Positions 13,980-49,272 of a stretch of 64,000 nt of DNA are shown here, in pieces. The stretch covers positions 133,548,001 to 133,612,000 of the forward strand of contig NC_091284.1 in the NCBI RefSeq assembly GCF_032444005.1, written 5' to 3'. Source of the DNA: Ranitomeya imitator (lineage: Eukaryota). The position numbers were made by a program, and so were the translations under genes. Numbering within the stretch: the first letter of the stretch is position 1; every line of letters begins with the position of its first letter. The notes under the pieces are model-generated. The model had not been told where the DNA came from, ran no database searches, and saw only the letters and a list, made by a program, of their open reading frames with translations.

Positions 13980-16509
13980 GATAGTAACATAGTAACATAG
14001 TTATTAAGGTTGAAGGAAGACTTTAAGTCCATCTAGTTCAACCCATAGCCTAACCTAACATGTCCTAACATGTTGATCCAGAGGAAGGCAAAAAAAACCA
14101 TGTGGCAAAGAGTAAGCTCCACACTGGGGAAAAAAAATCCTTCCCGACTCCACATACGACAATCAGACTGGTTCCCTGGATCAACACCCTAACAAGGAAT
14201 CTAATATATATACCCTGTAACATTATACTTTTCAAGAAAGACATCCAGTCCCCTCTTAAATTTAAGTAATGAATCACTCATTACAACATCATACGGCAGA
14301 GAGTTCCATAGTCTCACTGCTCTTACAGTAAAGATTCCGCATCTGTTATTATGCTTAAACCTTCTTTCCTGCAGACATAGAGGATGCCCCCTTGTCTCTG
14401 TCTCAGGTCTATGCAGGGACGTAACTACCACGGTCGCAGCAGTCGCCATTGCGACCGGGCCCGGGGTAGTCAGGGGCCCCGGCTGGTCAGATGCATGCCG
14501 ACACCAGCAAAAAGTTAAAAACTGTTGCCGTGCAGGTGATTCGTCCCGCACGGCAACAGACAGACCTGCCCTCCACCTGACCTGCCAGGCGCACACATCA
14601 GATCAGCAGCCGACGCCTGATCTGAAAGGAAGAGCTGAAGATCCTGTGGTGACGTCATCACTATCATAGGTCTTTCACCATTTATCAGCTCCGCCTCCTG
14701 ATCACATGACGATGACGTCACCACAAGTCCTTCAGCTCTCAGCAGCTCAGTCCTGGTGTGCAGCTCGTGTTCTCTGGTATCAACCAGCAGCAGATTTCCG
14801 GTTCCTGCTGTTCTGGTGAGATATGGAGACGGGAAGAATGTGGAGATGGATGGGGCAGAATGTGGAGAAGGATGGGGCAGAATGCGGAGACGGATGGGCA
14901 GAATGCGGAGACGGATGGGGCAGAATGCGGAGTCGGATGGGGCAGAATGCGGAGACGGATGGGGCAGAATGCGGAGACGGATGGGGCAGAATGCGGAGAC
15001 GGATGAGGCAGAATGCGGAGTCGGATGGGGCAGAATGCGGAGACGGTTGGGGCAGAATGCGGAGTCGGATGGGGCAGAATGAGGAGACGGATGGGGCAGA
15101 ATGCGGAGTCGGATGGGGCAGAATGCGGAGACGGATGGGGCAGAATGCGGAGACGGATGGGGCAGAATGCGGAGACGGATGGGGCAGAATGCGGAGTCGG
15201 ATGGGGCAGAATGCGGAGACGGATGGGGCAGAATGCGGAGTCGGATGGGGCAGAATGCGGAGACGGATGGGGCAGAATGCGGAGATGGATGGGGCAGAAT
15301 GTGGAGACGGATGGGGCAGAATGTGGAGACGGATGGGGCAGGAGCATGGGCAGGATGTGGATTTGGGTGGAAAATGTTTTGGTGGGGGGGCCCCATTTGT
15401 AAGTTCGCACCGGGGCCCATAACTTTGTAGTTACGCCACTGGGTCTATGATTAAAAGATCATCAGAAAGGTCTTTGTACTGTCCCCTCATATATTTATAC
15501 ATTAACATAAGATCAGCCCTTAGCCTTCGTTTTTCAAAACTAAATAGCCCCAAGTGTAATAACCTATCTTGGTATTGCAGACCCCCCAGTCCTCTTATAA
15601 CCTTGGTCGCTCTTCTCTGCACCCGCTCCAGTTCAGCTATGTCTTTCTTATACACCGGAGACCAGAACTGCACACAGTATTCTAAGTGTGGTCGAACTAG
15701 TGACATTGTATTGAGGTAAAATTATGTTCTTCTCATGAGCATCTATGCCTCTTTTAATGCATCCCATTATTTTATTTGCCTTTGTAGCAGCTACCTGACA
15801 CTGGCCACTATATGTGAGTTTGTCATCCACCCATACTCCCAGGTCTTTTTCATTGATGGTTTTGCCCAGAGTTTTAGAATTAAGCACATAGTTATACATC
15901 TTATTAACTCTACCCAAGTGCATGACCTTACATTTATGTCCATTAAATCTCATTTGCCATTTATCAGCCCAAGCTTGTAGTTTACATAAATCATCCAGTA
16001 ATATAAAATTGCCCTCCTCTGTTTTGATTACCCTGCAGAGTTTAGTGTCATCTGCAAATATTGAAATTCTGCTCTGAATGCCCCCTACAAGGTCATTAAT
16101 AAATATATTAAAAAGAAGAGAGCCCAATACTGACCCCTGTGGTACCCCACTGCTAATCGCGACCCAGTCCGAGTGTGCTCCATTAATAACCACCGTTTGT
16201 TTCCTATCCCTGAGCCAGCTCTTAACCCACTTACACATATTTTCCCCTATCCCCATTATTCTCATTTTATGTATCAACCTTTTGTGTGGCACCGTATCAA
16301 AAGCTTTTGAAAAGTCCATATACACTACATCTACTGGGTTCCCTTGGTCCAGTCCGGAACTAACCTCTTCATAGAAACTGATCAAATTAGTCTGACATGA
16401 ACGGTCCCTAGTAAACCCGTGCTGATACTGGGTCATGAGGTTATTCCTCTTCAGATACTCCAGTATAGCGTCCCTTAGAATGCCCTCCAGGATTTTACCC
16501 ACAGTAGAG
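13980..16509 (-). mobile_element. 5'-truncated CR1-clade LINE (RT and C-terminus), split by an hAT MITE
   Basis: RT ORF 15648-16502 (QHGF..RSCQTNL, DFSKAFD, GVPQGSVLG, FADDTKL); frameshifted C-terminus [13 protein letters not shown] and TRGH...WNSLP; 3' (TTACTATG)n microsatellite at ~13980-14000. Confidence 0.93.
14414..15441. mobile_element. hAT-type MITE with GC-rich ~22-bp minisatellite
   Basis: TIR CAG(G/T)GGCGTAACTAC-like; 8-bp TSD GGTCTATG (14406-13, 15442-49); repeat GGATGGGGCAGAATGCGGAGAC at 14827-15350. Confidence 0.9.
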
Positions 16510-19636: not shown

Positions 19637-22600
19637 TGTTAGGGGTCGAGTTCCCGCCTCTGCACAGGGGGAATCTCGGGCCATCTCCGCTGCGGTCTCC
19701 CATTCCTCTCCTGCCGCAGTTGAGCCTGCTCAGCGGAGACGTCAGTCCAAGCGTCTTGCTCAGTCCCACTCTGTACAAAGAGTTACTGCTGCCTTTCCTG
19801 CTTCTGCCATTGAAGTCAGTGCTGGGCAGCGGCGAGCAGACGCTTCTGCGACTAAGTCCTGCTTTTCTCATTCTGAGCATGACCTGAGTAAGATCTCTCA
19901 GTGGAGATCGAGGGTCACATGGTAGTAAGGTCCTATAGCTGCTAGGACTAACTCCTGCTTTTCACACACTGAGCATGCCCAGGGTAAGATCTCTCAGTGG
20001 AGATCTAGGGTCACATGCTCAGGTATGGCAGTCTCTCATTGGTCCTTCTAGGAAGGTCTTTTACTTGCTGCAGCTATATAAGGCTCGCATGGCCGCACGG
20101 CCATGCGCTAGTATCAATGCATGACATGAGTTTTGCGCCAGTGTGGTCACGCTTGTGTGTATTCAGGGACCCGGCTGAAATAAGCCACTAGAATACCGGC
20201 ACCTCCGGTGAGGAGATTGTGTGTTTGGTTACAGGGCCCCGGCTGAAATAAGCCACTAGAATACCGGCTCCTCCGGTGAGGAGATTGTATGTTTGCCTCC
20301 TGGACTGCGTGACCACAAGCTGCTATCTGCTCAGCAGTTACTGTGTATTCCTGTGGAGTTTAACAGGACACAGTCCTTTCCTTATAGCGACTCTGTGAAG
20401 CAACAGAGTTCGCTTCTACCGCCATATTGTGCCGCTGTTTGCCAGCAGCAGGTTCTTTTCCTGCACGGTGGACCCCGGGCTGCGAACGCACCAAATAACA
20501 TCTCTATATTTACTCGGTGCATTCCGCCAGCCCTAACAGTATACTAGCACCAGGGTCTGGCTGGTAAATGGCGGACGATCAGCGTTTACAGCGGTACATC
20601 CAGGAGCTGGAGGGTAGGTTGACGGCTCTCGAGCGCACAACCTCAGCTGTGGATGTTACCGCAGACGCTGTTCAGGCTGCAAGTGTAGCTGCAGCCAGTT
20701 TGTCCTCTGCCACCCCTGCTCCGACTTTATCCCGTCTCCCGCTTCCAGACAAGTTTGCTGGTGACAGTAAGCTATGTCGGGGATTCGTGAGTCAGTGCTC
20801 CATACATCTTGAGCTTCTGGCTGCACGTTTTCCTACGGAACGGGCGAAAGTGGGATTTATTTTATCCCTTTTGTCGGGCAGGGCGTTGGAGTGGGCAACG
20901 CCGCTATGGGAGCGCAATGATCGTGTGGCGCAGAGTGCTCCTCTCTTCCTGGACGCTCTGAAACAGGTCTTTTTGGGACCTCGTGTCACCCACGATACCG
21001 CGCTCCAATTGTTGGCAACAACAAAGGGTTCGTCCATGGTCAGCCAGTTCGCCGTGCAATTCCGGACTCTGGTCTCTGAGCTGGAATGGCCGGATAAAGT
21101 CCTTATTCCGGTGTTCTGGAGAGGACTGGCAGACCATGTGAAGGACGCCTTGGCCACCAGGGAGATTCCCGCCACACTGGAGGAGCTTATTTCTATATCT
21201 ACCCGCATCGACCTCCGTTTTAACGAGCGGAGGTTGGAGCGGGCCCAGTGTAGGCAGAGGTTTCGGCTGGCTCCCACCTTCGCCAGACCTCTGGAATCTT
21301 CCGTTCAGGCGTCCGACTCCCATGAGGCCATGGAGGTTTCTCGAGCGGGACCTAAGTCTCGGACCGCTCGAGTACCCATGGTTTGCAGAAATTGCCAACA
21401 AGAAGGACATTATGCCAATAAATGTCCACGGCGGTCGAGTAAACGATCGCGTCTAGTAACCCTTGGAGGAGGTTCACTAGACACAGCGGCATTTTCCTCC
21501 AAGCTGTCCTTCAAAGGGACAATCATATTAGGCTCTTACTCTCTAACAGTCGAGCTATGTGTGGATTCTGGAGCTGAGGGGAATTTCATCTCCTCAGCTT
21601 TTGCTCTGCGCCATGCAATACCTCTGGTGATGCTCGCCAAACCGGTGACTGTTAGGGTAGTGAATGGGTCGACACTTCCATCTCAGATCACACACCAGAC
21701 TGTCCCTTTCACGTTAGCTATGTCCCCATCCCACCAGGAGATAATTTCCCTTCTTGTCCTTCCCGAGGGACTGGATGAGATTCTGCTGGGAATACCCTGG
21801 CTCCCGTTTCCACTCCCCACATATTGAGTGGTCCTCTGGGAGGATATTGGGTTGGAGTGAATCCTGTAAGGGCAGATGTGTGAAAGAGTGCGTTCAGGTT
21901 TCCACCACTGAGATACCTGCAAATCTCTCTTCTCTTCCCAAATACTATTGGTCCTATGCAGACGTCTTCTCCAAAAAGGCTGCGGAGACCCTTCCGCCTC
22001 ACCGCCCCTATGACTGTCCTATAGATCTCTTGCCTGGAGCAGAACCTCCTCGGGGACGTTTCTATCCCCTCTCTCTTCCGGAAACGGAGGCCATGTCCCA
22101 ATACATCCAGGAGAATTTGGCAAGAGGGTTCATTAGGAAGTCAGTGTCACCAGCAGGGGCAGGGTTCTTCTTCGTGCAGAAGAAGAATGGAGAATTACGT
22201 CCTTGCATAGATTACAGGGGTCTTAACGCCATCACCGTTAAGAATAAGTACCCGCTGCCCCTGATTTCTGAGCTTTTTGATAGGCTAAGGGGAGCTAAGG
22301 TATTTACCAAATTAGATCTGCGGGGTGCTTATAACCTGATTCGCATCCGTAAGGGGGACGAATGGAAGACGGCGTTTAACACCAGAGATGGGCACTATGA
22401 GTATCTGGTGATGCCCTTCGGGCTCTGTAATGCCCCAGCCGTTTTCCAAGACTTTGTCAATGACATCTTCCGGGATATGCTTTCCACCTCGGTCGTATTC
22501 TATCTGGATGATATTATCATCTTTTCTCCAGATATTGACTCCCACCGGAGAGATGTTGGCAGAGTCTTCGACCTCTTACGGGCAAATTCTCTCTATGCAA

Positions 22601-25600
22601 AGTTGGAGAAGTGTATATTTGAGCAGGAGTCTTTACCTTTCCTGGGCTATATCATCTCCGCCCAGGGATTGGCTATGGATCCTGCCAAACTACAGGCTGT
22701 GATGGACTGGCAAGAACCCCATTCTCTTAAAGCGGTGCAGCGCTTTATGGGGTTCATTAATTATTACCGCCAGTTCATTCCCCACTTCTCAACTTTGGTA
22801 GCTCCCTTGGTAGCCCTCACCAAGAAGGGAGCAAATCCAAAATTGTGGTCAGAAGAGGTCTCCAGGGCCTTTTCTTCTATTAAGTCCCGTTTTGCTAGCG
22901 CTCCCATCCTACATCGTCCCGATGTTGATAAGCCATTCATAATGGAGGTGGATGCCTCATCCGTTGGTGCAGGAGCAGTCCTCTTCCAAAAGGATGCTCA
23001 AGGTCGGAAGCATCCTTGCTTCTTCTACTCCAAGACCTTCACACCAGCGGAGAGGAATTATTCCATCGGGGACAGGGAGTTGCTAGCGATGAAGTTGGCT
23101 TTCTCAGAGTGGAGACATCTCTTGGAGGGGGCTCGCTTTCCCTTTCAAGTCTTCACGGACCACAAAAATTTGTTATATTTGCAAACAGCCCAGCGGCTAA
23201 ATTCTCGCCAGGCCAGATGGTCCTTGTTCTTCTCCCGGTTCCACTTCACCCTCCATTATCTCGCTGGGGAGAAGAACATTCGTGCTGACGCCCTCTCTCG
23301 CTCTGTTGTGTCATCTGAGGAGGAGGAAGGGGAGCCTCGGCTTATTGTCCCTTCTGAGAGCCTGAGAACCGTAGCTCCGGTTTTGCTAGAGTCTGTGCCT
23401 CCGGGCAAGACTTTTGTACCCATTAATTTGCGACCGGAGGTTCTCTCTTGGGCTCATTCGTCCAGGGTGGGTGGACACTTTGGGACAAAAAGGACATCTG
23501 AGCTACTGGCGAGGTCGTACTGGTGGTCACATATGGTTCATGATGTCAGAGATTACATTCAGGCATGTGTCTCCTGTGCCAAAAATAAATCTCCTCGACA
23601 ACGGCCAGCAGGGTTACTCTATCCCTTGCCGGTGGCAGACAGGCCCTGGGAGATGGTCGGGATGGACTTTGTGGTGGGTTTGCCCAAGTCTCGTGGCTGT
23701 ACCATCATTTGGGTTGTCACCGATCATTTTTCTAAAATGGTGCATTTGGTCCCGCTTCCACGGTTACCTTCTGCACGGGCCTTGGCAGCGTTGTTCATAA
23801 AACACATCTTCCGCCTACACGGTATGCCGGACAAAATTGTCAGTGACCGGGGTCCCCAGTTTGCGTCTCGGTTCTGGAGAGAGCTTTGTTGTCTTCTCAG
23901 CATTGAGTTAAATCTCTCTTCCGCATATCATCCCGAGACGAATGGGTTGGTAGAGAGGGCCTACCAGACCTTGGTCACATATCTGCGACATTTTGTCTCA
24001 GCCAGGCAGGATGACTGGGCATCCTTGCTATCATGGGCAGAGTTTGCACTGAACAACGCCGTAGCCGACTCCACTGGACAAACCCCATTCCTCCTCAGCT
24101 ATGGTCAGCATCCACGGGTACCTGGGCCTATGCCCGTGTCTTCCGCCGACTCCAGGGTGGCAGACTGGGCTGTGGAGGCACGGGATATTTGGGACCGCAC
24201 TCAGGATGCCATTCGGGCCTCTAAGGAGAGAATGAGGTCCTCCGCCGATGCTCATCGGCGCCCCGCTCCGACCTTTGCTCCTGGCGACTTGGTGTGGCTC
24301 ACCGCCCGTAACATCAGGCTGCGAGTTGAGTCCACTAAATTTGCTCCTTGCTACTTGGGTCCGTTCAAGGTCCTTGAGCAGGTTAATCCTGTGGTCTATC
24401 GTTTGGCCCTTCCGCCACGCCTGGGTATCACCGACACCTTTCATGTGTCCCTCTTGAAACCTGTGTATATGTCCCGGTTTTCCGAGTCATCTGCTGGGAC
24501 ATCGGGTTCGTCTACGGACGATTATGAGGTGAACGCTATTTTGGGGTGCAAGGTGGTAGGTGGCAAAAAATTTTATTTGGTGGACTGGAAGGGTTATGGC
24601 CCCGAGGACAGGTCCTGGGAGCCTGCTGAGCACATTCAGGCTCCGCAGCTCATTGCTGTCTTTGAGCGTAGCGAGGTCCAAGGAGGGGGGGGCCCTAGGA
24701 GGGGGGGGTAATGTTAGGGGTCGAGTTCCCGCCTCTGCACAGGGGGAATCTCGGGCCATCTCCGCTGCGGTCTCCCATTCCTCTCCTGCCGCAGTTGAGC
24801 CTGCTCAGCGGAGACGTCAGTCCAAGCGTCTTGCTCAGTCCCACTCTGTACAAAGAGTTACTGCTGCCTTTCCTGCTTCTGCCATTGAAGTCAGTGCTGG
24901 GCAGCGGCGAGCAGACGCTTCTGCGACTAAGTCCTGCTTTTCTCATTCTGAGCATGCCCTGAGTAAGATCTTTCAGTGGAGATCGAGGGTCACATGGTAG
25001 GAAGGTCCTATAGCTGCTAGGACTAACTCCTGCTTTTCACACACTGAGCATGCCTAGGGTAAGATCTCTCAGTGGAGATCTAGGGTCACATGCTCAGGTA
25101 TGGCAGTCTCTCATTGGTCCTTCTAGGAAGGTCTTTTACTTGCTGCAGCTATATAAGGCTCGCATGGCCGCACGGCCATGCGCTAGTATCAATGCATGAC
25201 ATGAGTTTTGCGCCAGTGTGGTCACGCTTGTGTGTATTCAGGGACCCGGCTGAAATAAGCCACTAGAATACCGGCACCTGCGGTGAGGAGATTGTGTGTT
25301 TGGTTACAGGGCCCCGGCTGAAATAAGCCACTAGAATACCGGCTCCTCCGGTGAGGAGATTGTATGTTTGCCTCCTGGACTGCGTGACCACAAGCTGCTA
25401 TCTGCTCAGCAGTTACTGTGTATTCCTGTGGAGTTTAACAGGACACAGTCCTTTCCTTATAGCGACTCTGTGAAGCAACAGAGTTCGCTTCTACCGCCAT
25501 ATTGTGCCGCTGTTTGCCAGCAGCAGGTTCTTTTCCTGCACGGTGGACCCCGGGCTGCGAACGCACCAAATAACATCTCTATATTTACTCGGTGCATTCC

Positions 25601-31568: not shown

Positions 31569-33220
31569 CAGTTAGGGCCAGAAATATTTGGACAGTGACA
31601 CAATTTTTGCGAGTTGGGCTCTGCATGCCACCACATTGGATTTGAAATGAAACCTCTACAACAGAATTCAAGTGCAGATTGTAACGTTTAATTTGAAGGG
31701 TTGCACAAAAATATCTGATAGAAAATGTAGGAATTGTACACATTACTTTACAAACACTCCACATTTTAGGAGGTCAAAAGTAATTGGACAAATAAACATA
31801 ACCCAAACAAAATATTTTTATTTTCAATATTTTGTTGCAAATCCTTTGGAGGCAATCACTGCCTTAAGTCTGGAACCCATGGACATCACCAAACGCTGGG
31901 TTTCCTCCTCCTTAATGCTTTGCCAGGCCTTTACAGCCGCAGCCTTCAGGTCTTGCTTGTTTGTGGGTCTTTCCGTCTTAAGTCTGGATTTGAGCAAGTA
32001 AAATGCATGCTCAATTGGGTTTAGATCTGGAGATTGACTTGGCCATTGCAGAATGTTCCACTTTTTGGCACTCATGAACTCCTGGGTAGCTTTGGCTGTA
32101 TGCTTGGGGTCATTGTCCATCTGTACTATGAAGCGCCATCCAATCAACTTTGCAGCATTTGGCTGAATTTGGGCTGAAAGTATATCCCGGTACACTTCAA
32201 AATTCATCCGGCTACTCTTGTCTGCTCTTATGTCATCAATAAACACAAGTGACCCAGTGCCATTGAAAGCCATGCATGCCCATGCCATCACGTTGCCTCC
32301 ACCATGTTTTACAGAGGATGTGGTGTGCCTTGGATCATGTGCCGTTCCCTTTCTTCTCCAAACTTTTTTCTTCCCATCATTCTGGTACAGGTTGATCTTT
32401 GTCTCATCTGTCCATAGAATACTTTTCCAGAACTGAGCTGGCTTCTTGAGGTGTTTTTCTGCAAATTTAACTCTGGCCTGTCTATTTTTGGTATTGATGA
32501 ATGGTTTGCATCTAGATGTGAACCCTTTGTATTTACTGTCATGGAGTCTTCTCTTTACTGTTGACTTAGAGACAGATACACCTACTTCACTGAGAGTGTT
32601 CTGGACTTCAGTTGATGTTGTGAACGGGTTCTTCTTCACCAAATTAAGTATGCGGCGATCATCCACCACTGTTGTCATCCGTGGACGCCCAGGCCTTTTT
32701 GAGTTCCCAAGCTCACCAGTCAATTCCTTTTTTCTCAGAATGTACCCAACTGTTGATTTTGCTACTCCAAGCATGTCTGCTATCTCTCTGATGGATTTTT
32801 TCTTTTTTTTCAGCCTCAGGATGTTCTGCTTCACCTCAATTGAGAGTTCCTTTGACCGCATGTTGTCTGCTCACAGCAACAGCTTCCAAATGCAAAACCA
32901 CACACCTGGAATCCACCCCTGACCTTTTAACTACTTCATTGATTACAGGTTAACGAGGGAGACGCCTTCAGAGTTAATTGCAGCCCTTAGAGTCCATTGT
33001 CCAATTACTTTTGGTCCCTTGAAAAAGAGGACGCTATACATTACAGAGCTATGATTCCTAAACCCTTTCTCCGATTTGGATGTGGAAACTATCATATTGC
33101 AGCTGGGAGTGTGCACTTTCAGCCCATATTATATATATAATTGTATTTCTGAACATGTTTTTGTAAACAGCTAAAATAACAAAATTTGTGTCACTGTCCA
33201 AATATTTCTGGCCCTAACTG
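31569..33220 (-). mobile_element. Full-length Tc1/mariner transposon copy 2, same family as copy 1
   Basis: TA TSD (31567-68, 33221-22); same TIR; intact ORF. Confidence 0.97.
31824..32861 (-). CDS. Tc1 DD34E transposase, 345 aa
   Basis: WTDETK / MDNDPKH / SPDLNPIE; 6 aa differences from copy 1. Confidence 0.95.
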   Translation of the reverse strand: MRSKELSIEVKQNILRLKKKKKSIREIADMLGVAKSTVGYILRKKELTGELGNSKRPGRPRMTTVVDDRRILNLVKKNPFTTSTEVQNTLSEVGVSVSKSTVKRRLHDSKYKGFTSRCKPFINTKNRQARVKFAEKHLKKPAQFWKSILWTDETKINLYQNDGKKKVWRRKGTAHDPRHTTSSVKHGGGNVMAWACMAFNGTGSLVFIDDIRADKSSRMNFEVYRDILSAQIQPNAAKLIGWRFIVQMDNDPKHTAKATQEFMSAKKWNILQWPSQSPDLNPIEHAFYLLKSRLKTERPTNKQDLKAAAVKAWQSIKEEETQRLVMSMGSRLKAVIASKGFATKY

Positions 33221-37593: not shown

Positions 37594-37773
37594 TATCTCC
37601 CCATACGTATTGTCATAATTTTTAAGACTACCATTTGGGTCACTTTTTTGTTACATATATCTGTTTGTGGGGGGCGTGGTTTGCAGGAGACAGGAGCAGA
37701 CATGTTTTTACATAGTTCCTAATATTCCCCCTATTTCAGCTACCTAAAGCATATTAAATTATGGAAAACTAGG

Positions 37774-40700
37774 TGTTAGGAGTCGAGTTTCCTCTGCTGC
37801 ACAGGGGGAATCTCGATCCGTCTCCGCTGCGGTCTCCCATTCTCCTCCAGCCGCAGTGGAGTCTGCTCAGCAGGGACATCGCTCCCAGTGTCTTGCTCGC
37901 TCTCACTCTGTACAGAGAGTTACTGCTGCTTCTTCAGCTCCTGCCATTAAAGTCAGTGCTGGTCAGCAGCGAGAGGACTTCCCTGGGACTAAGTCCTTGT
38001 TTGCGCACACTGAGCATGCCCAGAGCAAGATCTCCCGTTGGAGATCGAGGGTCATGTGCTCTGGCTCTGCAGCGCATTCCATTGGTCCTCTTGGCAGGCC
38101 CTGGAAGGGCAAAGTTTCTGTGGCCACTTCCTGTCCTGCAATTATATAAACTGCGTATGACCGCATGGCCATGCGCTAGTGTACAATTGAATACGTGTGT
38201 TTGTTGTGAGTGCAAGTCGTTCATTAAATACCCCTACCCTATTGTATGACTGTTTGCGTATGGAGTATGGCTGCTATCTAGCGCCTGACAAATCACTCAA
38301 CGTGTCACACACGTATCAGCGTCTATTGCTGTGACCGCCAGTGCGGCGCCAAGCGCCAGTAGTGCGCTTCCTGACCCACGTCTGGGTGCTTAGTGGTGCC
38401 TGCCAGCACGGCACAGTTCGCACTTCGGTGCTCTAATTATAAGAGTTGCCTAACACACCCTGTTGCGGTGTTGTGCCAGCAAGTGGTCTAATCGGACTTC
38501 AATCCTAGTTGGGGTTAAGTTCGCTGACTGCTTGCTCGCCTTCTATGTGCGGTACCGCGATCCTGTGACGCAACAGGATCGCTTCCTTCACGTTGGGTGA
38601 AGTTTAACCCACGCGAGTATACTTATGAGTACCGCCATATAGTCCGTCATTACTCAGCAGCAGGTTCCATCTCTGCACGGCGGACCCCGGGCTACGAACG
38701 CACCGTACACTATCAGTCTTATTATTTGGTGCGTTCCGCTAGCCCTAACATTACACTAGCGCCAGGGTCTGGCTAGTGATGACAAACAGCAATCCCTGCG
38801 GTATATACAGCAGCTGGAGGGTAGGTTGGCGGCTCTCGAGAGCGCAACCCCAGCTGTGGATGTTACCGCAGTTGCTGTACAGGCTGCCAGCGTGGCTGCA
38901 GCAACTTTGTCCATTGCCACCCCTGTTCCGACATTTTCTCGCCTCCCGCTGCCAGAAAATTTTTCTGGTAATAGCAAATTTTGTAGGGGATTCGTGAGTC
39001 AGTGCTCTATTCATCTCGAGCTTCTGGCTGCACGTTTCCCCACAGAGCGGGCTAAGGTGGGATTTATTGTGTCTCTATTGTCGGACAGGGCGTTGGAATG
39101 GGCTACGCCGCTGTGGGAGCGTGGCGATCATGTGGTGCAGAGTGCTCCTCTGTTTTTGAGCACTTTAAAACAGGTCTTTTTAGGACCTCAAGTCACCCAT
39201 GACACTGCGCTCCAACTGCTGGCATTAACTCAGGGTGAGTCCTTGGTCAGTCATTTTGCCGTCCAATTCCGCACTTTAGCATCTGAGCTGGAATGGTCGG
39301 ATAAAGCTCTTATCCCCATATTTTGGAGGGGCTTGGCTGACCATGTAAAGGACGCTCTGGCCACTAGGGAGATTCCTGCCACACTGGGGGAGTTAATAAC
39401 AGTCTCCACTCGAATTGACCTCCGTTTTAACGAGCGGAGGTTAGAGCGAGCCCAGTGTAGGCAGAGGTTTCGGCTGGCTCCTACTTTCGCCAAACCTCTG
39501 GAATCTCCGGTCCTGGTTCCTGAGTCACATGAGGCCAGGGAAGTGTCACAAGCGGGACCTAAGTCCCGGACCGCTTGTGCACTCAGGGTCTGTCATGTTT
39601 GCCAGCAGTCTGGACATTTAGCCACCAGATGTCCTCAGCGGTCGAGGAAACGTCAGCGTCTAGTGGTCGTAGGTGGAGGTACACTAGACACGGCGACGTT
39701 TGCCTCTAAATTGTCCTTTAAGGGGACAATTACTTTAGGCTCATTCTCCCACTCGGTAGAGCTCTGCGTGGATTCTGGGGCGGAGGGCAATTTTATGTCT
39801 TCTGCCTTCGCCCAACGCCACTCAATACCTCTGGTTATGCTAGCTCAACCTGTAACGGTACGAGTGGTGAATGGGTCAACTCTGCCCTCACAGATAACTC
39901 ACCAGACCATCCCTTTTACTCTGTCCATGTCGCCATCTCATCAGGAGATTATTTCTCTGCTCGTCATTCCAGAGGGAATTGATGAAGTCCTGTTGGGAAT
40001 ACCTTGGCTACGGTACCACTCTCCTCATATCGAGTGGTCCTCAGGCAGAATTCTGGGATGGGGTGAATCTTGTGAGGGTAGGTGTCAGAGGGAGTGCGTT
40101 CAGGTAGCTACAACTGAGGTACCCGCAGATCTTTCCTCTCTCCCCAAGCAGTATTGGTCGTATGCAGACGTATTCTCCAAAAAGGCGGCGGAGACCCTTC
40201 CGCCCCATCGCCCCTATGACTGTCCTATTGACCTCTTGCCTGGTGCTGAGCCTCCCCGGGGTCGAGTCTATCCGCTATCTCTCCCGAAGACGGAGGCAAT
40301 GTCACAGTACATCCAGGAAAATCTGGCAAGAGGGTTCATCAGGAAGTCAGTGTCACCTGCTGGGGCAGGGTTCTTCTTCGTGCAGAAGAAGAGTGGGGAA
40401 TTGCGTCCATGCATAGACAACAGGGGTCTTAACGCCATCACCGTTAAGAATAAATACCCTTTGCCTTTGATATCTGAACTGTTTGATAGGCTTCGGGGAG
40501 CAAGGGTATTTACTAAATTAGATCTGCGGGGTGCTTACAACTTGATTCGCATCCGTGAGGGGGACGAATGGAAGACGGCTTTTAACACCAGGGATGGGCA
40601 CTATGAATATCTGGTGATGCCCTTTGGGCTCTGTAATGCCCCAGCCGTTTTCCAAGACTTTGTGAACGATATCTTCCGGGATATGCTTTCCACCTCGGTC

Positions 40701-43700
40701 GTAGTCTATCTGGATGATATTCTCATCTACTCTCCAGATATTGACTCCCACCGGAGAGATGTTTGCAAAGTCTTCGACCTCCTACGGGCAAACTCCCTCT
40801 ATGCCAAGTTGGAGAAGTGTATGTTTGAGCAGGAGTCCTTACCTTTCCTAGGCTACATCATCTCAGCCCAGGGATTGGCTATGGATCCTGCCAAACTACA
40901 GGCTGTGATGGACTGGCAGGAACCCCATTCTCTTAAAGCGGTGCAGCGCTTTATGGGGTTCATCAATTATTATCGCCAGTTCATCCCGCATTTCTCAACT
41001 TTGGTAGCTCCCTTGGTTGCCCTCACCAAGAAGGGGGCGAATCCCAAATTGTGGTCTGAGGAGGTCTCCAAGGCTTTTATATCTATAAAGTCACACTTCG
41101 CTAGCGCTCCCATTCTTCATCGCCCCGATGTTGATAAGCCATTTATCATGGAGGTGGATGCCTCTTCTGTTGGTGCTGGAGCAGTCCTCTTCCAAAAGGA
41201 TGCTCAAGGTCGGAAGCATCCTTGCTTCTTTTTCTCCAAGACCTTCGCACCAGCAGAGAGGAATTATTCCATCGGGGACAGGGAGTTGCTAGCCATGAAG
41301 TTGGCTTTCTCGGAGTGGAGACATCTCTTGGAGGGAGCACGTTTTCCCTTCCAAGTCTTCACAGATCACAAAAATTTGGTGTATCTGCAGACAGCTCAGC
41401 GGTTGAATTCTCGCCAGGCCAGATGGTCCTTGTTCTTCTCCCGGTTTCATTTCACCCTCCATTTCCTTTCTGGGGAGAAGAACATTCGGGCCGACGCTCT
41501 CTCTCGCTCCGTTGTGTCATCTGCGGAGGAGGAGGAGGAGCCTCGGCTTATTGTCCCCACCGAGAGTTTGAGAACCGTGGCCCCGGTTTCGCTGGAGTCT
41601 GTGCCCCCGGGCAAGACTTTTGTTCCATCTAGTTTGCGACCGGAGGGTCTCTCTTGGGCGCACTCGTCCAGGGTGGGTGGACATTTTGGTACTAAAAGGA
41701 CATCAGAGTTACTGGCGAGGACATACTGGTGGCCGCATATGGCTCGTGATGTCGCGGAGTACGTTCGGGCGTGTGTCTCTTGCGCCAGGAACAAGACTCC
41801 TCGGCAACGGCCAGCTGGTTTGCTATATCCTCTGCCCGTGGCTGACAGGCCCTGGGAGATGGTCGGGATGGACTTTGTGGTTGGCTTACCCAAGTCTCGT
41901 AATTGCACCATTATCTGGGTGATCACCGATCATTTTTCCAAAATGGTGCATTTGGTGCCTCTTCCACGGCTACCTTCTGCACGGGCGTTGGCTGTCTTGT
42001 TTATCAAGCATATCTTTCGCTTACACGGTATGCCAGACAAAATTGTTAGTGACCGGGGTCCCCAGTTTGCGTCTCGATTCTGGAGGGAGCTATGTCGTCT
42101 ACTCAGTATTGAGTTAAATCTCTCTTCGGCATATCATCCCGAGACGAATGGGTTGGTAGAAAGGGCCAACCAGACCTTGGTCACATATCTGCGACATTTT
42201 GTTTCTGCCAGACAGGATGACTGGGCATCCTTGCTACCGTGGGCAGAGTTTGCACTTAACAATGCCGTAGCCGACTCCACCGGTCAGACTCCATTCCTCT
42301 TAAATTACGGCCAGCATCCGCGTGTTCCTGTGCCCATGCCTGTGTCTTCCGCTGATCCCAGGGTGGCAGACTGGGCTGTGGAGGCACGGGACATTTGGGA
42401 TCGCACGCAGGATGCCATTCGGGCCTCCAAGGAGAGAATGAGGTCCTCCGCCGATGTTCATCGGCGCCCTGCTCCGACTTTTGCCCCTGGCGACTTGGTG
42501 TGGCTCTCCGCCCGTAACATCAGGCTGCGAGTTGAGTCCACTACGTTTGCTCCTCGCTACTTGGGTCCCTTCAAGGTTCTCGAACAGATTAATCCTGTGG
42601 TCTACCGCCTGGCTCTTCCTCCACGCTTGGGTATCACCGACACCTTTCATGTGTCCCTCTTGAAACCCGTATACATGTCCCGGTTTTCCGAGTCATCTGC
42701 CGGGACATCGGGTTCGTCTACGGACGATTACGAGGTGAACGTTATTTTGGGGTGCAAGGTGGTACGCGGCAAAAAGTTTTATTTGGTGGATTGGAAGGGT
42801 TATGGTCCAGAGGACAGGTCTTGGGAGCCTGCTGAAAACATTCGGGCCCCACAGCTCATTGCTGCCTTCGAGCGTAGCGAGGCCCAGGGGGGGGGGGGCC
42901 CTAGGAGGGGGGGTAATGTTAGGAGTCGAGTTTCCTCTGCTGCACAGGGGGAATCTCGATCCGTCTCCGCTGCGGTCTCCCATTCTCCTCCAGCCGCAGT
43001 GGAGTCTGCTCAGCAGGGACATCGCTCCCAGTGTCTTGCTCGCTCTCACTCTGTACAGAGAGTTACTGCTGCAACTTCAGCTCCTGCCATTAAAGTCAGT
43101 GCTGGTCAGCAGCGAGAGGACTTCCCTGGGACTAAGTCCTTGTTTGCGCACACTGAGCATGCCCAGAGCAAGATCTCCCGTTGGAGATCGAGGGTCATGT
43201 GCTCTGGCTCTGCAGCGCATTCCATTGGTCCTCTTGGCAGGCCCTGGAAGGGCAAAGTTTCTGTGGCCACTTCCTGTCCTGCAATTATATAAACTGCGCA
43301 TGACCGCACGGCCATGCGCTAGTGTACAATTGAATACGTGTGTTTGTTGTGAGTGCAAGTCGTTCATTAAATACCCCTACCCTATTGTATGACTGTTCGC
43401 GTATGGAGTATGGCTGCTATCTAGCGCCCGACAAATCACTCAACGTGTCACACACGTATCAGCGTCTATTGCTGTGACCGCCAGTGCGGCGCCACGCGCC
43501 AGTAGTGCGCTTCCTGACCCACGTCTGGGTGCTTAGTGGTGCCTGCCAGCACGGCACAGTTCGCACTTCGGTGCTCTAATTATAAGAGTTGCCTAACACA
43601 CCCTGTTGCGGTGTTGTGCCAGCAAGTGGTCTAATCGGACTTCAATCCTAGTTGGGGTTAAGTTTGCTGACTGCTTGCTCGCCTTCTATGTGCGGTACCG

Positions 43701-43893
43701 CGATCCTGTGACGCAACAGGATCGCTTCCTTCACGTTGGGTGAAGTTTAACCCACGCGAGTATACTTATGAGTACCGCCATATAGTCCGTCATTACTCAG
43801 CAGCAGGTTCCATCTCTGCACGGTGGACCCGGGGCTACGAACACACCGTACACTATCAGTCTTATTATTTGGTGCGTTCCGCTAGCCCTAACA
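37774..43893 (+). mobile_element. Full-length chromodomain Ty3/Gypsy retrotransposon B
   Basis: 977-bp LTRs 37774-38750 and 42917-43893; 5-bp TSD CTAGG/CCAGG; PPT; single gag-pol ORF. Confidence 0.97.
38826..43292 (+). CDS. Gypsy B gag-PR-RT-RH-IN-chromodomain polyprotein, reading into the 3' LTR
   Basis: [26 protein letters not shown] integrase, chromodomain; the ATG upstream of gag is out of frame. Confidence 0.93.
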
Positions 43894-45685
43894 CCAGGTT
43901 ACAAAACCTACTAAAACATGCCTGGACTGGGTTAAAAGAAGAAAAAAGAACATTCAACCAAAAAAAAATCCCTTTATTAAAACGGAGGGACAAATAGAGA
44001 AGATCTAATGAAAGCCTGCTCTCATCTGAGGTAAAGGTGACAAAGCCTTTGCCTCACAATATGGATCCCTGCAAAAAAACAGAGCCACAACTTCACAATA
44101 GTCATATGGCCTGTAAGACATCTGTTATAAAACATCCTGCACTCTTTGAGACATCAGCTGATGCTGTCCTGCAAATAAACCAGAGGAGCGCGGGAGATTC
44201 TGAGGCAATGAAGAAGCAGCGGAGAGGAGAAAATGGCGACGCGGCAACAACTCCCGCCCTTTCCGGAGCTCCAGCTGACAGATATCCAAAGACGCTCAAA
44301 GGGATCGCGATAGCTGCTGGAGCTGTGACACAGCGGAAGGAGGAAGCAGGAGAAGACATGGAGATGACGGAGATCCTCGCTCCTATCGAGACTCCAATGC
44401 AAGCTGCCAGACATAAGAAGAGGAGTGGGGGAGCCATGGAGTTCTCACAAGGTATGACGCAGCAAACAGAAAAAGATGGTGATTCACCATCTTCAGCACT
44501 GCACAGACATGGAGAGTTCTCCTCAGCTCTCCGTGTCCAAAGAAGTGATCACAGACATGATGCTGTGACGATGCAGAGGAGAAAGGAAGGAGAATCACCA
44601 GCATTAACACCACACGGTGGGGGGGATCTCTTCAGCTCTCATAGATCAAAGAAGTAATTTGAGACATGATGCACCGCTGTTTGTGCCAGGGCCAATAAGC
44701 GCTGAGGGAGGCAGATCATTTAATGTGACAAAGGAAAAGGAAGGAAGTGTTATACAACTGCGGGGCTTGTCAGAAACACCCCATGTTGGCTGGTCAGGGA
44801 AAAAACCCTCTGAAAATCACACAGTATACAGGGACACAGAGGGAAAAACCCTCTTCCATAATTCAGATATAAAAGAAGAAAGAAAAAATCAAAGAGATGG
44901 CATTATCAGACATTCATATGGAGCAGTTAGCAAAATACCGATATTAAAAACTAAAAATCATCAACCATCACTTAATGTAAAGAATGGTGCCACTTCTACT
45001 TCTTTACATAATAGCCATAAAAACACAGCATATTTAAAGGGGAACCCTACACATACAAAACAATTGTATATCCTGGTAATCACAGGAGATGGATCTTTCA
45101 AAGAATCATCAAATGTAAAGACAGATGAGGCCAAAATTTTATCTGATGATGGGGGTGTTGATCTGCATCTGATTTCTCTACCTGAAAAAAAATTCCCCTT
45201 CTAAGTCCTCATACAATACTAGATATTACAATTTAGGGAAAATTAAAAGGAAGTTTCCTAATGTAGCTCCTTATTCTGCTAAATCTGTTAAAGAAACAAC
45301 AAATATCTCCAACACAGACAAATTTGTTTCCTACCAATCAGATGAATCCATTAACTCATCAGGACAGATGGAAAATGGTCATTTTGGGAAGTTTTACAGC
45401 GATATAGATTCATCTGATTATAGAGGTGACTTTTTTTCAGATGATATGACCCTTGATGACATCTATTCTTCAGAGTCAGATTCTTCCTCAGAACACTAAT
45501 CTAGTAGTGAAAACTCTGAATTTTATGAAAAATTTAAGCAAAAAACTAAACTAAACAAAAGCAAATCAAACCAAATCAGAAAAAATTACAAGGGCACTCT
45601 AACAACAACAACTCATTGATAAACGATATCCAAGCAACAGATGATAATCCAACAGAAAAATTTATGATTAGCCCTCCAAGTTTCA

Positions 45686-46423
45686 GTGAAAACTACTACT
45701 AGTGACGATGACTCAAAAATATCTGAAACCGATTTGGAATCTGAAGACTCTATACACTTAAACAATACCAAAGCGTCCGAGAGTTTCATTAAAGAGCTCT
45801 TTAAAGATATGTTATCAAACATATCTGTTAACATACACTCAAATTCTTATGGAGTTTCTGATAACTCCTTCTATAACTCAAAAAAAAAAATCTCTTCAGT
45901 CAAAAATCAAAGGTCCTCATATCCTAATGAGGACCAAAATCTTGCTACACTCTCTGATTCATTGAAAAATATCCAAAATGATATCAACTCTTTTAGAAAA
46001 AATCTAAACAATCTTGAAGACTTTAAAAAGAAAAATAATGTAAAAATTAGAGGAATTCCAAAGTCGGTCCAGAACTCACAACTAAAAGATTACATCTCTT
46101 CATTAATTTCTTATCTACTTTCTAACGCCAAAGAGGAAAATTTAATTGAAAAGGCCTTTAGAGTATGCAGACTATCTGCTCTTCCACCTGATGTCGAAAC
46201 AGATGTCATTGTCTCCTACCCCAATTGGGTTAGAAATGCTTTACTAAATATACCAAAGGAGCCGAAATTCCTTTCTTCTCCATATAACCACTTGGTCTTT
46301 TTCAAAGACCTATCTAAAGAAACATTACAAAAGCGAAAATTATTTCAGTCCACTACCTGTGAACTCCGAAAAGCTGGAATACCTTACAATTGGTCTCAGA
46401 TCTCATTGCTAAAATTAAATTAA
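45686..46423 (+). pseudogene. L1 ORF1p-like region (coiled coil, RRM, CTD)
   Basis: LEDFKKKNNVKIRGIPK, IEKAFRV, FFKDLSKETLQKRK..LRKAGIPYNW resemble L1 ORF1 motifs RRNNIRIxGIPE, IERAHR and DLS..TL..R. Confidence 0.8.
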
Positions 46424-49272
46424 ATTAAATTTGCATCCAAATTGATCGATATTTCATCTCCGGCGGAGGGAGCTGACTTCCTGATAGGTGCAGGCATAAT
46501 ATCCTCCATGGACCCCCACGGACTCCTCTCGAAGTCCAAATCTGATCTTCGTCCCAAATAAAGAAATTCTACAAACAAACAACACCTTATTGAACATATT
46601 GACTCTATTACTTGAACTCCCAGAAAGACTTTTCTTCATTTATTCCTCAATTGTAGCCTGTTTTTCAACTGTACTTTGCCCCTACAAGGTCATAGGAACA
46701 CCTAAAAGTGATTCCAGACATCCCAGGGCGTATTTATTTTTCCTTTTGAACCATATTTGACTTTTGAGTAAGCGACAGTTGTCTTGGTTCTATTTGAGTA
46801 AGCTACAGTATGTTAAAGTATTAAAGTCCTGTATTTTCTTTCCCCTTTCTTTCCCTATTATCCCATGTATCCTATTTTCCCCGTACCCTTTACTCTTACC
46901 TTTGTTAAATTTGTAAACCAATAAAAATTTGTTGGAAAAACATATATCTGTTTGTTGTTATTGCATTATTCACGGTGGTGCTACTCTTTTGCAGGGTATA
47001 ACAGGGTATAACAGGCTCATTGAGGGCGAGTCAACATTGAGTCAACATGGAGTGGGGTCATCATATCGCTTTTTAAGGTGCCAACTTTTGTGGCAAGGTA
47101 GGGTATCCATCAGGTGAAAACTAGGGCCAGAATCCCTATTGCTCATTTCTGTGACCTGCCCCTGTCTGACAAAGCCCCCTTTTTAATACTGATCTTTTCA
47201 AGTTGTTGTAAATAGTAGGAGGGTCTTTTTTAGCGTTTTTGAAGGAGGGGGAGCAGGATCAGCTGTGATGTCACAAGTTATGACTGGTGGATATTGTGTT
47301 GTCAGCTGTGTATAGAGGTGTTACCTGTTATTGTAATCCTGCCTATGCTGATAAGGAACCTGCTGAAAAATTTCCCTGAAAGAACATGTGAACATTGCAA
47401 GCATAGTATTTTTTTTTTTTTATAAAGATTTTGATATGGAAAAAAAGCATTGCCAATTTAAAAAAATATAGATAAAAACAAAAACCAGATTTAAGCAATT
47501 AGTCATTTTTTGATGATAGCTTCCTTTTGATTTCTTAAAGTAAAGAGAACTTCACGAGACCATTGCTCAATGACGGTGAGTGTGTATAGTGGTCTGAACC
47601 GTGCAGTATAAGGGGCCCTTGTTTGGAAATTATTTTATATGGGGATTTGCATTTTAGAACCCATACACTGTAACTGATGTAACTTTGGGAATATTCGTAT
47701 CCTATTGTATTACACAATGTACCAGTACATTTTAACTCCAGCTCCACTAATCCACATATTCTGTGCACTGTCGTTCTGTACTTTCGAATATCAGCCTAAT
47801 TTCTCTTTGGCCCATAAATCAACCGGAAGATACGTCACATTTTTCTCATCTACGATTGCTAGATAAATGACATATAAAAAACAAAACAAATAGGTGCCAT
47901 TAATTTTCATTAATTTTCACAGCGCAAAGAGCGATATAGAACTGTCTACAGATTCGTCATAGCCAATATTTTCCCTGACATAGGAAAAAACTGACTATAT
48001 GAAATATCTGTTTAGATTCGCTTAAGTGTCAGCGGCCATGAGAAGGTACACGTCTAAAAATAGAAATCGTTTATTTCCAAAATTACTTGGCAAACACTGT
48101 GCTTAACTGTGAAAATATGTTTACGGCAGCAGCGTGTGCTCACAAAAAAGGATCCAGGGTAAGAGGCAGCAGTTTGTGACATTTTATGGTGTCTCAGCCC
48201 CCAGATGGCTGCAGCAATATACATTGTTAAGGGAAATAATTCAACTCTTCACAGGAATTCCTTTAATCCTAAATGAAATGTCTTCCTTCGAAACACGTCG
48301 GGTTGACATCTGATGAGATTGTGGATGTCTATTAATCTTCAGCTTCTGCTAAGTGTCCTGTATCCAGCGCCTCTTATAGCTGTCACAAGTCTCCAATCAT
48401 AAATTGTTCAAGGATAGTAGGTTTTTACTTAAAAAAAGGACTTGTATTTCACTCCACTATTTTACCGCTATTCAGTGGCTTATATTGGTCAACAAAAATC
48501 GCGCATCTGATTAGCAGTCAACTCCAGTTGCCATAGGCTTTGGTGAAAAAAAAAATGTATTTCATTGCTATGATGTTGTAAGTTATATGGGTAGAAATGA
48601 ACAATGTCAAAAAATCAATTTACATATCTAATAGTAGAAGTCATATCTACTTCTATAAAGGGTACAGGTAAAAATAACTCCAAATAAATAATACAGTATG
48701 TTAATTGTGGCAAAGCCAGGAGTGTTTGATTTCAGTCTTAAATATATATTATTTTTCAGTTTAATGTTAAATTCCTTTTTATACTGTGTTGAATCAGCGG
48801 TCATTATGTTTACATCAGTAAGTTGGCCATACACATGAGATTAGACAAACTGTCTGGGGCTGCTCACTTTCACATTGGAAGGTAAGCAGCGCTGATGATG
48901 TCACGTCTGCCCAAACCTGCGAGACCAGTACATGATCGGCAGATATCGTGCCCCTGTCCTATTAATTAGCATTGGACACACGCATGAAACTTGCTGATTG
49001 GGCACCAGTTATGAAGGCGTAAAGTCATCATGACTGCCCAACCGTTCAAGTGGTAAAGAGCAGTACCAGACAACTTTTTTAATGTTGGTAAAAAAAAAAA
49101 ATCATGTAATATGTGTATAAAGACCATCTGACTCTTGCTCAATGGCAGATATTGGGCAAAAGAAAGATACGAAAATTGGATTTGAACATAACTGGTCTTT
49201 TTATTCTCAAGGGATATAAGTCGCGCTTCCTATTCAGAATACATGTTTGTTCAGATAAACATTTATACATAA

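Follow-up and report, generated by a model that had tools for sequence, protein, structure and literature searches.

A probable half-L1-like retroelement copy with a broken giant ORF1 in the poison frog Ranitomeya imitator

A retroposed unit split by a nested Gypsy element

In the window, by which we mean the whole 64-kb stretch of Ranitomeya imitator DNA that was analyzed, positions 37669-46939 are a retroposed unit bracketed by a perfect 16-bp target site duplication (TSD) and split by a nested long terminal repeat (LTR) retrotransposon (Table 1). The TSD 16-mer, ACATATATCTGTTTGT, is present at exactly two places in the window, one on either side of the unit, with a chance expectation of ~0.06 matches even when two mismatches are permitted, and the flanks beyond the two copies are unrelated to each other. 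The unit opens at its first position with a G run, GGGGGGCGTGG, and its 3′ end consists of AATAAA, 10 nt, and AAAA. Two of its marks were counted against a half-L1 reading: the A tail is just 4-5 nt long, and the target site TT/ACAT fits only partly the TT/AAAA that the mammalian L1 endonuclease prefers.

The nested element has TG..CA LTR ends, the gag-PR-RT-RNaseH-IN order of Ty3/Gypsy elements, and a short target duplication with one mismatch (CTAGG at 37769-37773 and CCAGG at 43894-43898, 5 bp, 4/5 identical); Pfam identified gag, PR, RVT_1, RNase H, integrase, and chromo domains in its single intact open reading frame (ORF). The Gypsy element inserted later, into the 5′ region of the half-L1-like copy, and its two LTRs are ~1.1% diverged from each other. 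Without it, the unit measures 105 + 3041 = 3146 bp. A sequence-only reading of this DNA had proposed a Gypsy insertion within a unit of ~3.15 kb bracketed by a 16-bp TSD and ending in AATAAA and an A tail, and these proposals agree with what we found, except that the tail is very short.

Table 1. Features of the retroposed unit and the nested Gypsy element, in window coordinates
Feature	Position	Strand	Evidence or remark
16-bp TSD, 5′ copy	37653-37668	+	Exact 16/16 repeat
5′ end of unit: G run, 5′ UTR, doubtful candidate ATG 37761	37669-37773	+	
Ty3/Gypsy chromovirus-type LTR retrotransposon, nested	37774-43893	+	LTRs, Pfam domains, TG..CA ends
Gypsy LTRs	37774-38750 and 42917-43893	+	977 bp each, 11 mismatches (98.9%)
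Gypsy ORF, 1488 aa, intact	38826-43292	+	gag-PR-RT-RNaseH-IN-chromo
Gypsy target duplication, second copy CCAGG	43894-43898	+	4/5 identical to CTAGG
5′ region of unit, continued: probably 5′ UTR, or, with a start at 37761, N-terminal codons	43899-44060	+	
Broken giant ORF1, ~830 codons	44061-46561	+	Frame changes and stops mapped
PAM2-like motif LRHDAPLFVP (L-x3-A-x2-F-x-P)	44659-44688	+	Pattern common to the clade
Conserved island ..P-T-E-K.., frame 1, upstream of helical region	45613-45666	+	Collinear with P0020 residues 211-228, P0001, and P0151
Coiled-coil helix (residues 80-114 of the 245-aa piece)	45923-46027	+	AF2 helix, pLDDT ~95
RRM domain, L1 ORF1p type	46037-46306	+	Profile match to 2ykp, 1.6e-28; Foldseek
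C-terminal domain (CTD) of ORF1p, broken by stop 46421-46423	46307-46558	+	tblastn against P0001
3′ UTR, 378 bp, with AATAAA 46920-46925 and A tail 46936-46939	46562-46939	+	
16-bp TSD, 3′ copy	46940-46955	+	Exact 16/16 repeat

A giant ORF1 with an L1 ORF1p-type C-terminal part

The unit's ORF1, the RNA-binding gene of L1 elements, spans ~820-890 codons, more than twice the usual length. Its frame shifts at a G7 run (44619-44625), at an A8 run (45185-45192), around 45580, and around 45668-45696, and it is further broken by in-frame stops at 45497-45499 and 46421-46423. Residues 358-623 of the R. imitator protein P0001 align by tblastn to 45737-46522, so homology crosses the single in-frame stop at 46421-46423, and the terminal stop is the TAA at 46559-46561. 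The sequence-only reading had ended the ORF1 homology at 46423 and followed it with a 3′ UTR of ~500 bp; both statements have to be corrected, since ORF1 reads through to the TAA and the 3′ UTR is therefore 378 bp. That reading had also placed the start of a broken ORF of ~840 codons at ATG 37761. The long broken frame is present, but the start is doubtful, first because it requires an extra frameshift within 43998-44005 (frame 2 is open only as far as 44005, and the main frame is open after 43997), and second because CCAGG must then be the original target sequence, the CTAGG copy putting a TAG at codon 4. ATG 44061 or 44106 in the main frame, giving ~820-830 codons, fits better because neither the additional frameshift nor CCAGG ancestry is needed; weak alignments to the N termini of the two nearest relatives lie just downstream of 44106.

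A search by exhaustive phmmer with the 245-aa piece of ORF1 returned 346 relatives, of which the best was P0001 (4e-39) and the others were ordinary frog L1 ORF1p proteins of about 310-420 aa. Searches of the ORF pieces against Pfam, PDB sequences, and a word index gave nothing useful, and the relatives came from exhaustive phmmer alone. A family profile built from 49 members matches human LINE-1 ORF1p (2ykp) at 1.6e-28 over the coiled coil, RRM, and CTD, and it also touches the L1TD1 CTD structure 2lr6 (E = 1.5e-4). Comparison with the Pfam Transposase_22 model (PF02994) gave a divided answer: the 245-aa piece alone falls below threshold, which was counted against the half-L1 reading, whereas 13 of the 49 family members pass at E ≤ 0.01, and P0005 is among the relatives that do so.

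The AF2 model of the 245-aa piece (pLDDT 82.6) consists of a long helix, then the RRM, then the CTD, and all ten top-ranked Foldseek matches are trimers of L1 ORF1p (E = 2.9e-6 to 6.6e-5). A homotrimer was predicted with a score of 0.56 against 0.16 for the best control, a result that may reflect memory of 2ykp, and the predicted interface (residues 85-116) is heptad-spaced and runs through the coiled coil. Of 30 solved homo-pairs, 21 reached the mark set for this score, and none of 23 single chains did. In the homotrimer prediction, partner pLDDT is at least 60, and at least 35% of contacts agree between runs. ESM Atlas returned only LINE ORF1-type clusters (Baculo_FP_2nd and Transposase_22; 0.90-0.91), which is consistent and adds nothing. 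Because of the phmmer homology, the profile match, and the predicted fold, we assign the C-terminal part of the giant ORF1 as a true L1 ORF1p with coiled coil, RRM, and CTD, as its L1 ORF1p-like appearance had suggested. It is scarcely credible that the unit combines a chance repeat with chance open frames in AT-rich DNA: apart from the low GC content (38%) nothing speaks for this, and it is refuted by the TSD statistics, the phmmer homology, the family profile, and the fold that matches L1 ORF1p.

Ahead of the L1 ORF1p part lie ~600 residues of extension, and the median number of residues ahead of the RRM is ~118 among 118 relatives. We detected no relatives of the extension in Pfam, PDB-sequence, or word-index searches, and BLASTP of three N-terminal pieces against P0020 gave no significant similarity. 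The extension had been described as long and of low complexity; it is long but not purely low-complexity, as it contains a PAM2-like motif and the conserved island. The pattern L-x3-A-x2-F-x-P is also present in P0001 (residue 237) and P0151 (residue 281), in 0 of 160 other related proteins, and at one further place in the window's 128,000 six-frame codons. Against the PAM2 consensus of PABP partners, LNxxAxEFxP (PMC7356810), the window motif matches at four of six positions, that of P0001 at five, and that of P0151 at four. All three clade members have L, A, F, and P at consensus spacing and P0001 also has the N, whereas the window copy has other residues in place of the consensus N and E. 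The Pfam PAM2 model matched only P0001, and weakly (E = 0.7; 10.2 bits against a cut-off of 20), with nothing in the window piece, and phmmer against PDB returned nothing for the 33-aa PAM2-like stretch. The PAM2 reading, with 4-5 of six consensus positions and one weak Pfam match, was itself counted against the half-L1 reading.

Absence of ORF2 and the origin of the copy

We detected no RT-, EN-, or ORF2-like sequence across the 3,146 bp of the unit. In the 3′ UTR, none of the small ORFs matches Pfam or reads like ORF2, and on the Pfam result we rejected a truncated ORF2 start there. An Rfam scan of 43890-47100 was blank; the unit therefore has no SINE-type RNA head or tail. No L1 ORF2 is present in the 64-kb window, and a non-LTR RT at 15648-16499 on the minus strand was rejected as a partner, as it resembles R2-type RTs more closely than L1 ORF2p. 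The unit is thus one complete, TSD-flanked copy that contains an L1 ORF1 but no ORF2-like sequence, in keeping with the ORF1-only content first proposed for it. The unit's two halves were kept apart at the Gypsy element in all searches, and in self-BLAST they showed no further copy in the window and only one weak internal 93-bp duplication.

The copy, P0001, and P0151 form a clade (SH-aLRT 99, stem length 0.91) apart from ordinary frog L1 ORF1p. P0001 (annotated "mucin-3A-like," with two transcript accessions) and P0151 are long R. imitator ORF1-like proteins of 625 and 678 aa; both are RefSeq gene models whose long ORFs are intact, and they lie on two chromosomes. There are at least four diverged loci or lineages, namely the window, P0001, P0151/P0002, and P0020, at 39-54% identity, and Gypsy-type sequence disrupts or is fused to both the window unit and the P0151/P0002 locus. 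A collection of 15 billion proteins contained no same-family protein (above ~50% identity), and this was counted against the half-L1 reading, as was the possibility that P0001 and P0151 are host genes.

The lack of ORF2 might reflect a one-off loss from an autonomous L1 with a giant ORF1, either because the template was spliced or prematurely polyadenylated, as happens to mammalian L1 RNAs, or by a later deletion. That only a single copy was seen was counted in favor of such a loss, but we judge it unlikely: the 378 bp after the ORF1 stop have no endonuclease-like reading or Pfam match, hence no ORF2 start; a deletion would have to excise ~3.5-4 kb cleanly, leaving the ORF1 stop joined to the 3′ UTR; and ORF1 lies on a long branch, separate from ordinary frog L1 ORF1p. 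Alternatively, the unit could be a processed pseudogene, an L1-made retrocopy of the mRNA of a domesticated, L1TD1-like ORF1 gene of poison frogs, with P0001 and P0151 as living paralogues. The intact ORFs of these two RefSeq models on two chromosomes and the lack of a same-family protein in databases suit this explanation, and a TSD and poly(A) signal are expected of any retrocopied mRNA. However, there are at least four diverged loci or lineages, Gypsy disruption or fusion at several of them suits junk copies and not genes, and a 5′ G run is typical of full-length L1-type insertions; we therefore regard a processed pseudogene as distinctly unlikely.

The explanation that we favor, with some reserve, is that the unit without the Gypsy element is likely to be a dead copy, made by retroposition, of a nonautonomous, L1-derived retrotransposon of half-L1 type that encodes ORF1 only. 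Its template RNA had, in this order, a G-rich 5′ end, a single giant ORF1, and the 378-bp 3′ UTR with a poly(A) signal. Such an RNA would have been made by Pol II and polyadenylated, coated in cis by its own ORF1p, and integrated via target-primed reverse transcription by the ORF2p of an autonomous frog L1. We infer such mobilization in trans by L1 ORF2p from the TT/A target site, the 16-bp TSD, and a 3′ end with poly(A) signal and tail. The copy later decayed and now has 4-5 frameshifts and two stops.

The PAM2-like motif may dock poly(A)-binding protein and in this way help the ribonucleoprotein (RNP) to meet ORF2p at the poly(A) tail, so that this motif, conserved in an otherwise unalignable extension, gives a concrete idea of how a nonautonomous element could compete for ORF2p there. 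A more far-reaching proposal, which we put forward tentatively and consider rather improbable, is that L1 parasites with ORF1 only form a clade in poison frogs that is old and sustains itself, and that their giant ORF1p acquired a PAM2 docking site. The RNP, bound to PABP at the poly(A) tail of the element, would then capture the ORF2p of autonomous L1 there. If true, PABP docking would be a hijack of reverse transcriptase at the protein level, a strategy not yet described among LINE derivatives. This analysis flags R. imitator RefSeq models such as "mucin-3A-like" as probable retroelement ORF1 proteins.

Comparison with known ORF1-only elements and ORF1-derived genes

In the C-terminal part, coiled coil, RRM, and CTD follow one another as they do in L1 ORF1p of humans (2ykp, 2yko, and 2ldy) and ordinary L1 ORF1p of frogs (310-420 aa), and this part shares with the human protein the profile match, the fold (TM 0.55-0.66), and a predicted parallel coiled-coil trimer. 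Identity to human L1 ORF1p in the fold alignments is only 16-19%, with no direct Pfam match for the window piece. The window protein further differs from L1 ORF1p in ~600 extra N-terminal residues, in extra helices upstream of the coiled coil, and in changes at several near-invariant residues (E126K, P171E, and R172T). HeT-A of Drosophila telomeres (see also bioRxiv 10.1101/2025.06.09.658640) is likewise a non-LTR element that keeps ORF1/gag only and relies on the reverse transcriptase of others, but it belongs to the Jockey clade, has a zinc-knuckle gag, is telomere-specific, and shows no homology to the window ORF1.

L1TD1, a domesticated L1 ORF1 gene of placental mammals (PMC4161310), shares with the unit a long ORF1-derived protein without ORF2. 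It is a single host gene, whereas the unit is a TSD-flanked, decayed retroposed copy with several diverged R. imitator loci. The window copy is probably a half-L1-like element, and its nearest parallel lies in the half-L1 (HAL1) elements of mammals (Smit 1999; Bao and Jurka 2010, as cited in PMC5753468), which show that ORF1p alone can suffice for a parasite of L1. Shared with HAL1 are derivation from L1, coding capacity for ORF1p only, a poly(A) signal and tail, an L1-type TSD, and presumed borrowing of ORF2p; we found no half-L1 described outside mammals in the literature searched. The window unit differs in having an amphibian instead of a mammalian host, in the length of ORF1 (~820-890 codons vs. 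roughly 340 aa for mammalian L1 ORF1p), in its long N-terminal extension with a PAM2-like motif, and in an ORF1 that belongs to its own deep clade and is not a recent offshoot of a co-resident L1. If the amphibian lineage with its deep ORF1 clade is real, the half-L1 life-style would have arisen outside mammals as well and could last long enough there to diversify.

Boundaries of the unit and its nested Gypsy element

The half-L1-like unit is bracketed by two copies of the 16-mer ACATATATCTGTTTGT, the only ones found in the whole window with up to two mismatches allowed, against a chance expectation of 0.06 matches in shuffled sequence. The flanks beyond the two copies have no mutual similarity, so the pair does not mark where a larger duplication ends, and the 16-bp target-site duplication (TSD) proposed in an earlier, sequence-only reading stands. 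The unit opens with GGGGGGCGTGG immediately after the first copy and closes with AATAAA, 10 nt, and AAAA directly before the second. Both the AATAAA and the A tail described in that reading are thus present; the tail is genuine though very short, 4 A, or 5 when the first TSD base is counted. No further copy of the unit was detected within the window.

Removal of the nested Ty3/Gypsy chromovirus-type element leaves 105 + 3041 = 3146 bp, in agreement with the ~3.15 kb estimated previously; the two halves flanking it were searched separately throughout and never joined. Its 977-bp LTRs differ at 11 positions (98.9% identity), and its single intact ORF of 1488 aa encodes gag, protease, reverse transcriptase (RT), RNase H, integrase, and chromodomain. 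The other transposons of the window include a second Ty3/Gypsy with two separate ORFs, gag-protease (419 aa) and pol-chromodomain (985 aa), in contrast to the one fused ORF of the nested element, and two intact 345-aa Tc1/mariner transposase ORFs in opposite orientation, both with HTH_Tnp_Tc3_2 and DDE_3 and with near-identical Pfam profiles.

Features of the unit and other transposons in the window
Feature	Position (strand)	Detail
Tc1/mariner transposase ORF	6575-7612 (+)	
Non-LTR RT fragment	15648-16502 (-)	RVT_1, 1.4e-28
Second Ty3/Gypsy	20568-24711 (+)	
Tc1/mariner transposase ORF	31824-32861 (-)	
TSD, first copy	37653-37668	
Half-L1 unit	37669-46939	split by nested Ty3/Gypsy
Gypsy target duplication	37769-37773 / 43894-43898	CTAGG / CCAGG, 4/5 identical
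Nested Ty3/Gypsy	37774-43893	TG..CA ends
Imperfect 93-bp tandem duplication	44471-44563 / 44582-44672	70% identity
Frame change	44619-44625	G7
PAM2-like motif	44659-44688	LRHDAPLFVP
Frame change	45185-45192	A8
In-frame stop	45497-45499	
Frame change	near 45580	
Conserved island	45613-45666	frame 1
Frame change	within 45668-45696	
In-frame stop	46421-46423	
ORF1 terminus	46559-46561	TAA
3′ UTR direct repeat	46764-46815	TTGAGTAAGCGACAGT / TTGAGTAAGCTACAGT, about 32 bp apart
AATAAA	46920-46925	
A tail	46936-46939	AAAA
TSD, second copy	46940-46955	

Identity and reading frame of ORF1

Direct Pfam, PDB-sequence, and word-index searches with the ORF pieces were blank. An exhaustive search with the C-terminal open stretch of ORF1 (245 aa) retrieved 346 relatives, the majority about 310-420 aa long and from frogs (Leptobrachium, Eleutherodactylus, Aquarana, and Hyla). 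Comparison with Transposase_22, the Pfam family of the L1 ORF1p RRM, which the sequence-only reading had proposed, was blank for the pieces themselves but positive for 13 of 49 aligned family members (E ≤ 0.01). A profile of the 49 sequences matched the human LINE-1 ORF1p trimer 2ykp (1.6e-28) across coiled coil, RRM, and CTD, and also matched 2ldy, 2w7a, 2jrb, and the L1TD1 CTD. The AlphaFold model of the 245-aa piece (mean pLDDT 82.6) comprises one long helix, an RRM of four strands, and the first part of the CTD, and L1 ORF1p takes all ten top Foldseek ranks. Modeled as a trimer, three chains of residues 30-245 gave a heptad-spaced interface at residues 85-116 and a score of 0.56 versus 0.16 for the best control, with partner pLDDT of at least 60 and at least 35% of contacts agreeing between runs; 21 of 30 solved homo-pairs reach the mark applied, as opposed to 0 of 23 single chains. 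With 2ykp a solved structure, the predictor may have reproduced it from training data, and the predicted trimer shows likeness to L1 ORF1p, not function. The C-terminal third of ORF1, earlier described as L1 ORF1p-like, is beyond reasonable doubt an L1 ORF1p.

Three-frame translation and ORF listing gave successive open stretches of 206, 195, about 97, and 245 codons in shifting frames, unusually long for DNA with 38% GC. The frame is broken by stops and frameshifts, as recognized earlier. Two of the frame changes fall within homopolymers (G7 and A8) and may be real indels or long-read assembly errors, and ORF1 may thus be less broken than it appears. Between the two more downstream changes, a short frame-1 stretch was accepted because it holds an island conserved and collinear with three Ranitomeya imitator relatives (P0020, P0001, and P0151). 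For comparison purposes the broken frame was read through with X at the breaks, no residue being supplied there. The tblastn alignment of P0001 crosses the second in-frame stop and reaches within two residues of the P0001 C-terminus, which places the end of ORF1 at the TAA and leaves a 3′ UTR of 378 bp, carrying a direct repeat, rather than an end at 46423 followed by ~500 bp.

The previously proposed start, ATG 37761, requires an additional frameshift within the 8 bases 43998-44005 and also requires CCAGG to be the original copy of the Gypsy target, since with CTAGG the fourth codon is a stop. ATGs at 44061 and 44106 lie in the main frame and need neither, and just past 44106 there is weak alignment to the N-termini of P0001 and P0151. 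These observations argue against 37761 and would place the Gypsy in the 5′ UTR, with the putative ORF1 read as about 820-830 codons (about 890 were 37761 the start).

The ORF1 clade and its N-terminal extension

The three best matches of the 245-aa piece are P0001 (XP_069614618, "mucin-3A-like," 625 aa; E 4e-39), P0151 (XP_069609349, 678 aa), which shares its locus with the ENA model P0002 (CAJ0966905), and the chimeric gene model P0020; no protein above about 50% identity to the unit's ORF1 was found in the protein collections searched. ORF1 homology in P0151/P0002 breaks off abruptly after ..SWSPSSTL, and beyond it P0002 carries Retrotrans_gag and aspartyl protease. Shortly past the RRM, then, the gene model runs into a Gypsy-type element, a fusion resembling the Gypsy insertion in the window. 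Maximum-likelihood analysis of 76 ORF1p domains grouped the window copy with P0001 and P0151 (SH-aLRT 99, stem length 0.91), a clade within the frog L1 ORF1p radiation and separate from all its ordinary members; the tree left out P0020, missed by the domain pattern, and two further relatives, P0106 and P0107, which fell outside its range (P0003-P0099).

In 118 M-start relatives the median RRM start is residue 118, versus 462 in P0001 and about 650 in the window, so a very long N-terminal extension marks the clade. No relatives of the extension were detected by Pfam, P0020 comparison, or sequence-collection searches. It had been described as long and low complexity; long it is, but it is not featureless, for all three clade members share L-x3-A-x2-F-x-P (LNYNAPVFIP in P0001, LRYDAAPFTP in P0151). 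The pattern is absent from the other 160 fetched proteins (about 56,000 residues) and occurs once more in the window's 128,000 six-frame codons. Within the tandem duplication of the extension it is confined to the second duplicate, the first reading ..DHRHDAVTMQ.. without F and P. The clade motifs agree with the PAM2 consensus LNxxAxEFxP (PMC7356810) at 4-5 of 6 positions; the Pfam PAM2 model matched weakly and in P0001 only (E 0.7), and searching the PDB with the stretch returned no match. The motif is conserved, and its putative PAM2 function is plausible; among the papers searched, none was found that connects ORF1p to a PAM2 motif in this way. Long Pro/Ser-rich N-terminal extensions are also seen in P0106 (a 2826-bp Logan contig; 742 aa) and P0107 (Eleutherodactylus coqui, XP_066439048; 547 aa), and both lack the PAM2-like pattern; long ORF1p extensions in frogs may have more than one origin.

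Absence of ORF2 and history of the insertion

No match to RT, endonuclease, or other ORF2 features was detected within the unit, and the 378 bp after the ORF1 stop neither resemble an ORF2 start nor match an RNA family, so that ORF1 without ORF2 holds for the copy in the window. Chance origin of the feature is excluded. It is possible that an autonomous L1 with a giant ORF1 lost its ORF2 in a single event, but this requires clean removal of 3.5-4 kb and leaves the separate deep ORF1 clade unexplained. The unit could also be a processed pseudogene of a domesticated, L1TD1-like ORF1 gene, P0001 and P0151 being RefSeq gene models; however, several diverged loci exist, and Gypsy-type sequence interrupts, or is fused to, both the window copy and the P0151/P0002 locus.

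An ORF1-only RNA, probably polyadenylated, was reverse-transcribed into the site, duplicating 16 bp; the Gypsy entered the 5′ region afterward, and both then decayed slightly. The copy is now dead but was probably coding at insertion, since its damage, two stops plus 4-5 frameshifts over 2.5 kb, is consistent with neutral divergence of a few percent, the Gypsy LTRs alone having diverged by 1.1%. An autonomous L1 would have supplied the RT: CR1 and L2 also occur in the R. imitator genome, and L1 machinery is indicated instead by the length of the TSD, the TT/A target, and the presence of a poly(A) signal and tail. ORF1p would act in cis by binding the RNA that encodes it, and tail-bound PABP may be the anchor to which the PAM2-like motif tethers the RNP. 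Counting against this L1-mediated history are the shortness of the tail, a target that resembles the mammalian endonuclease site only in part, and the absence of L1 ORF2 from the window, where the non-LTR RT fragment has R2-type RTs as its nearest solved structures (6e-11) and matches L1 ORF2p weakly (about 6e-4); this fragment is an unlikely partner of the half-L1.

No mention of half-L1 elements was found in the frog genome papers searched, and in the searchable literature HAL1 is a mammalian phenomenon with several independent origins (PMC5753468). Probably a half-L1 itself, the unit shares with HAL1 its L1-derived, ORF1-only type and differs from it in its frog host and giant ORF1.
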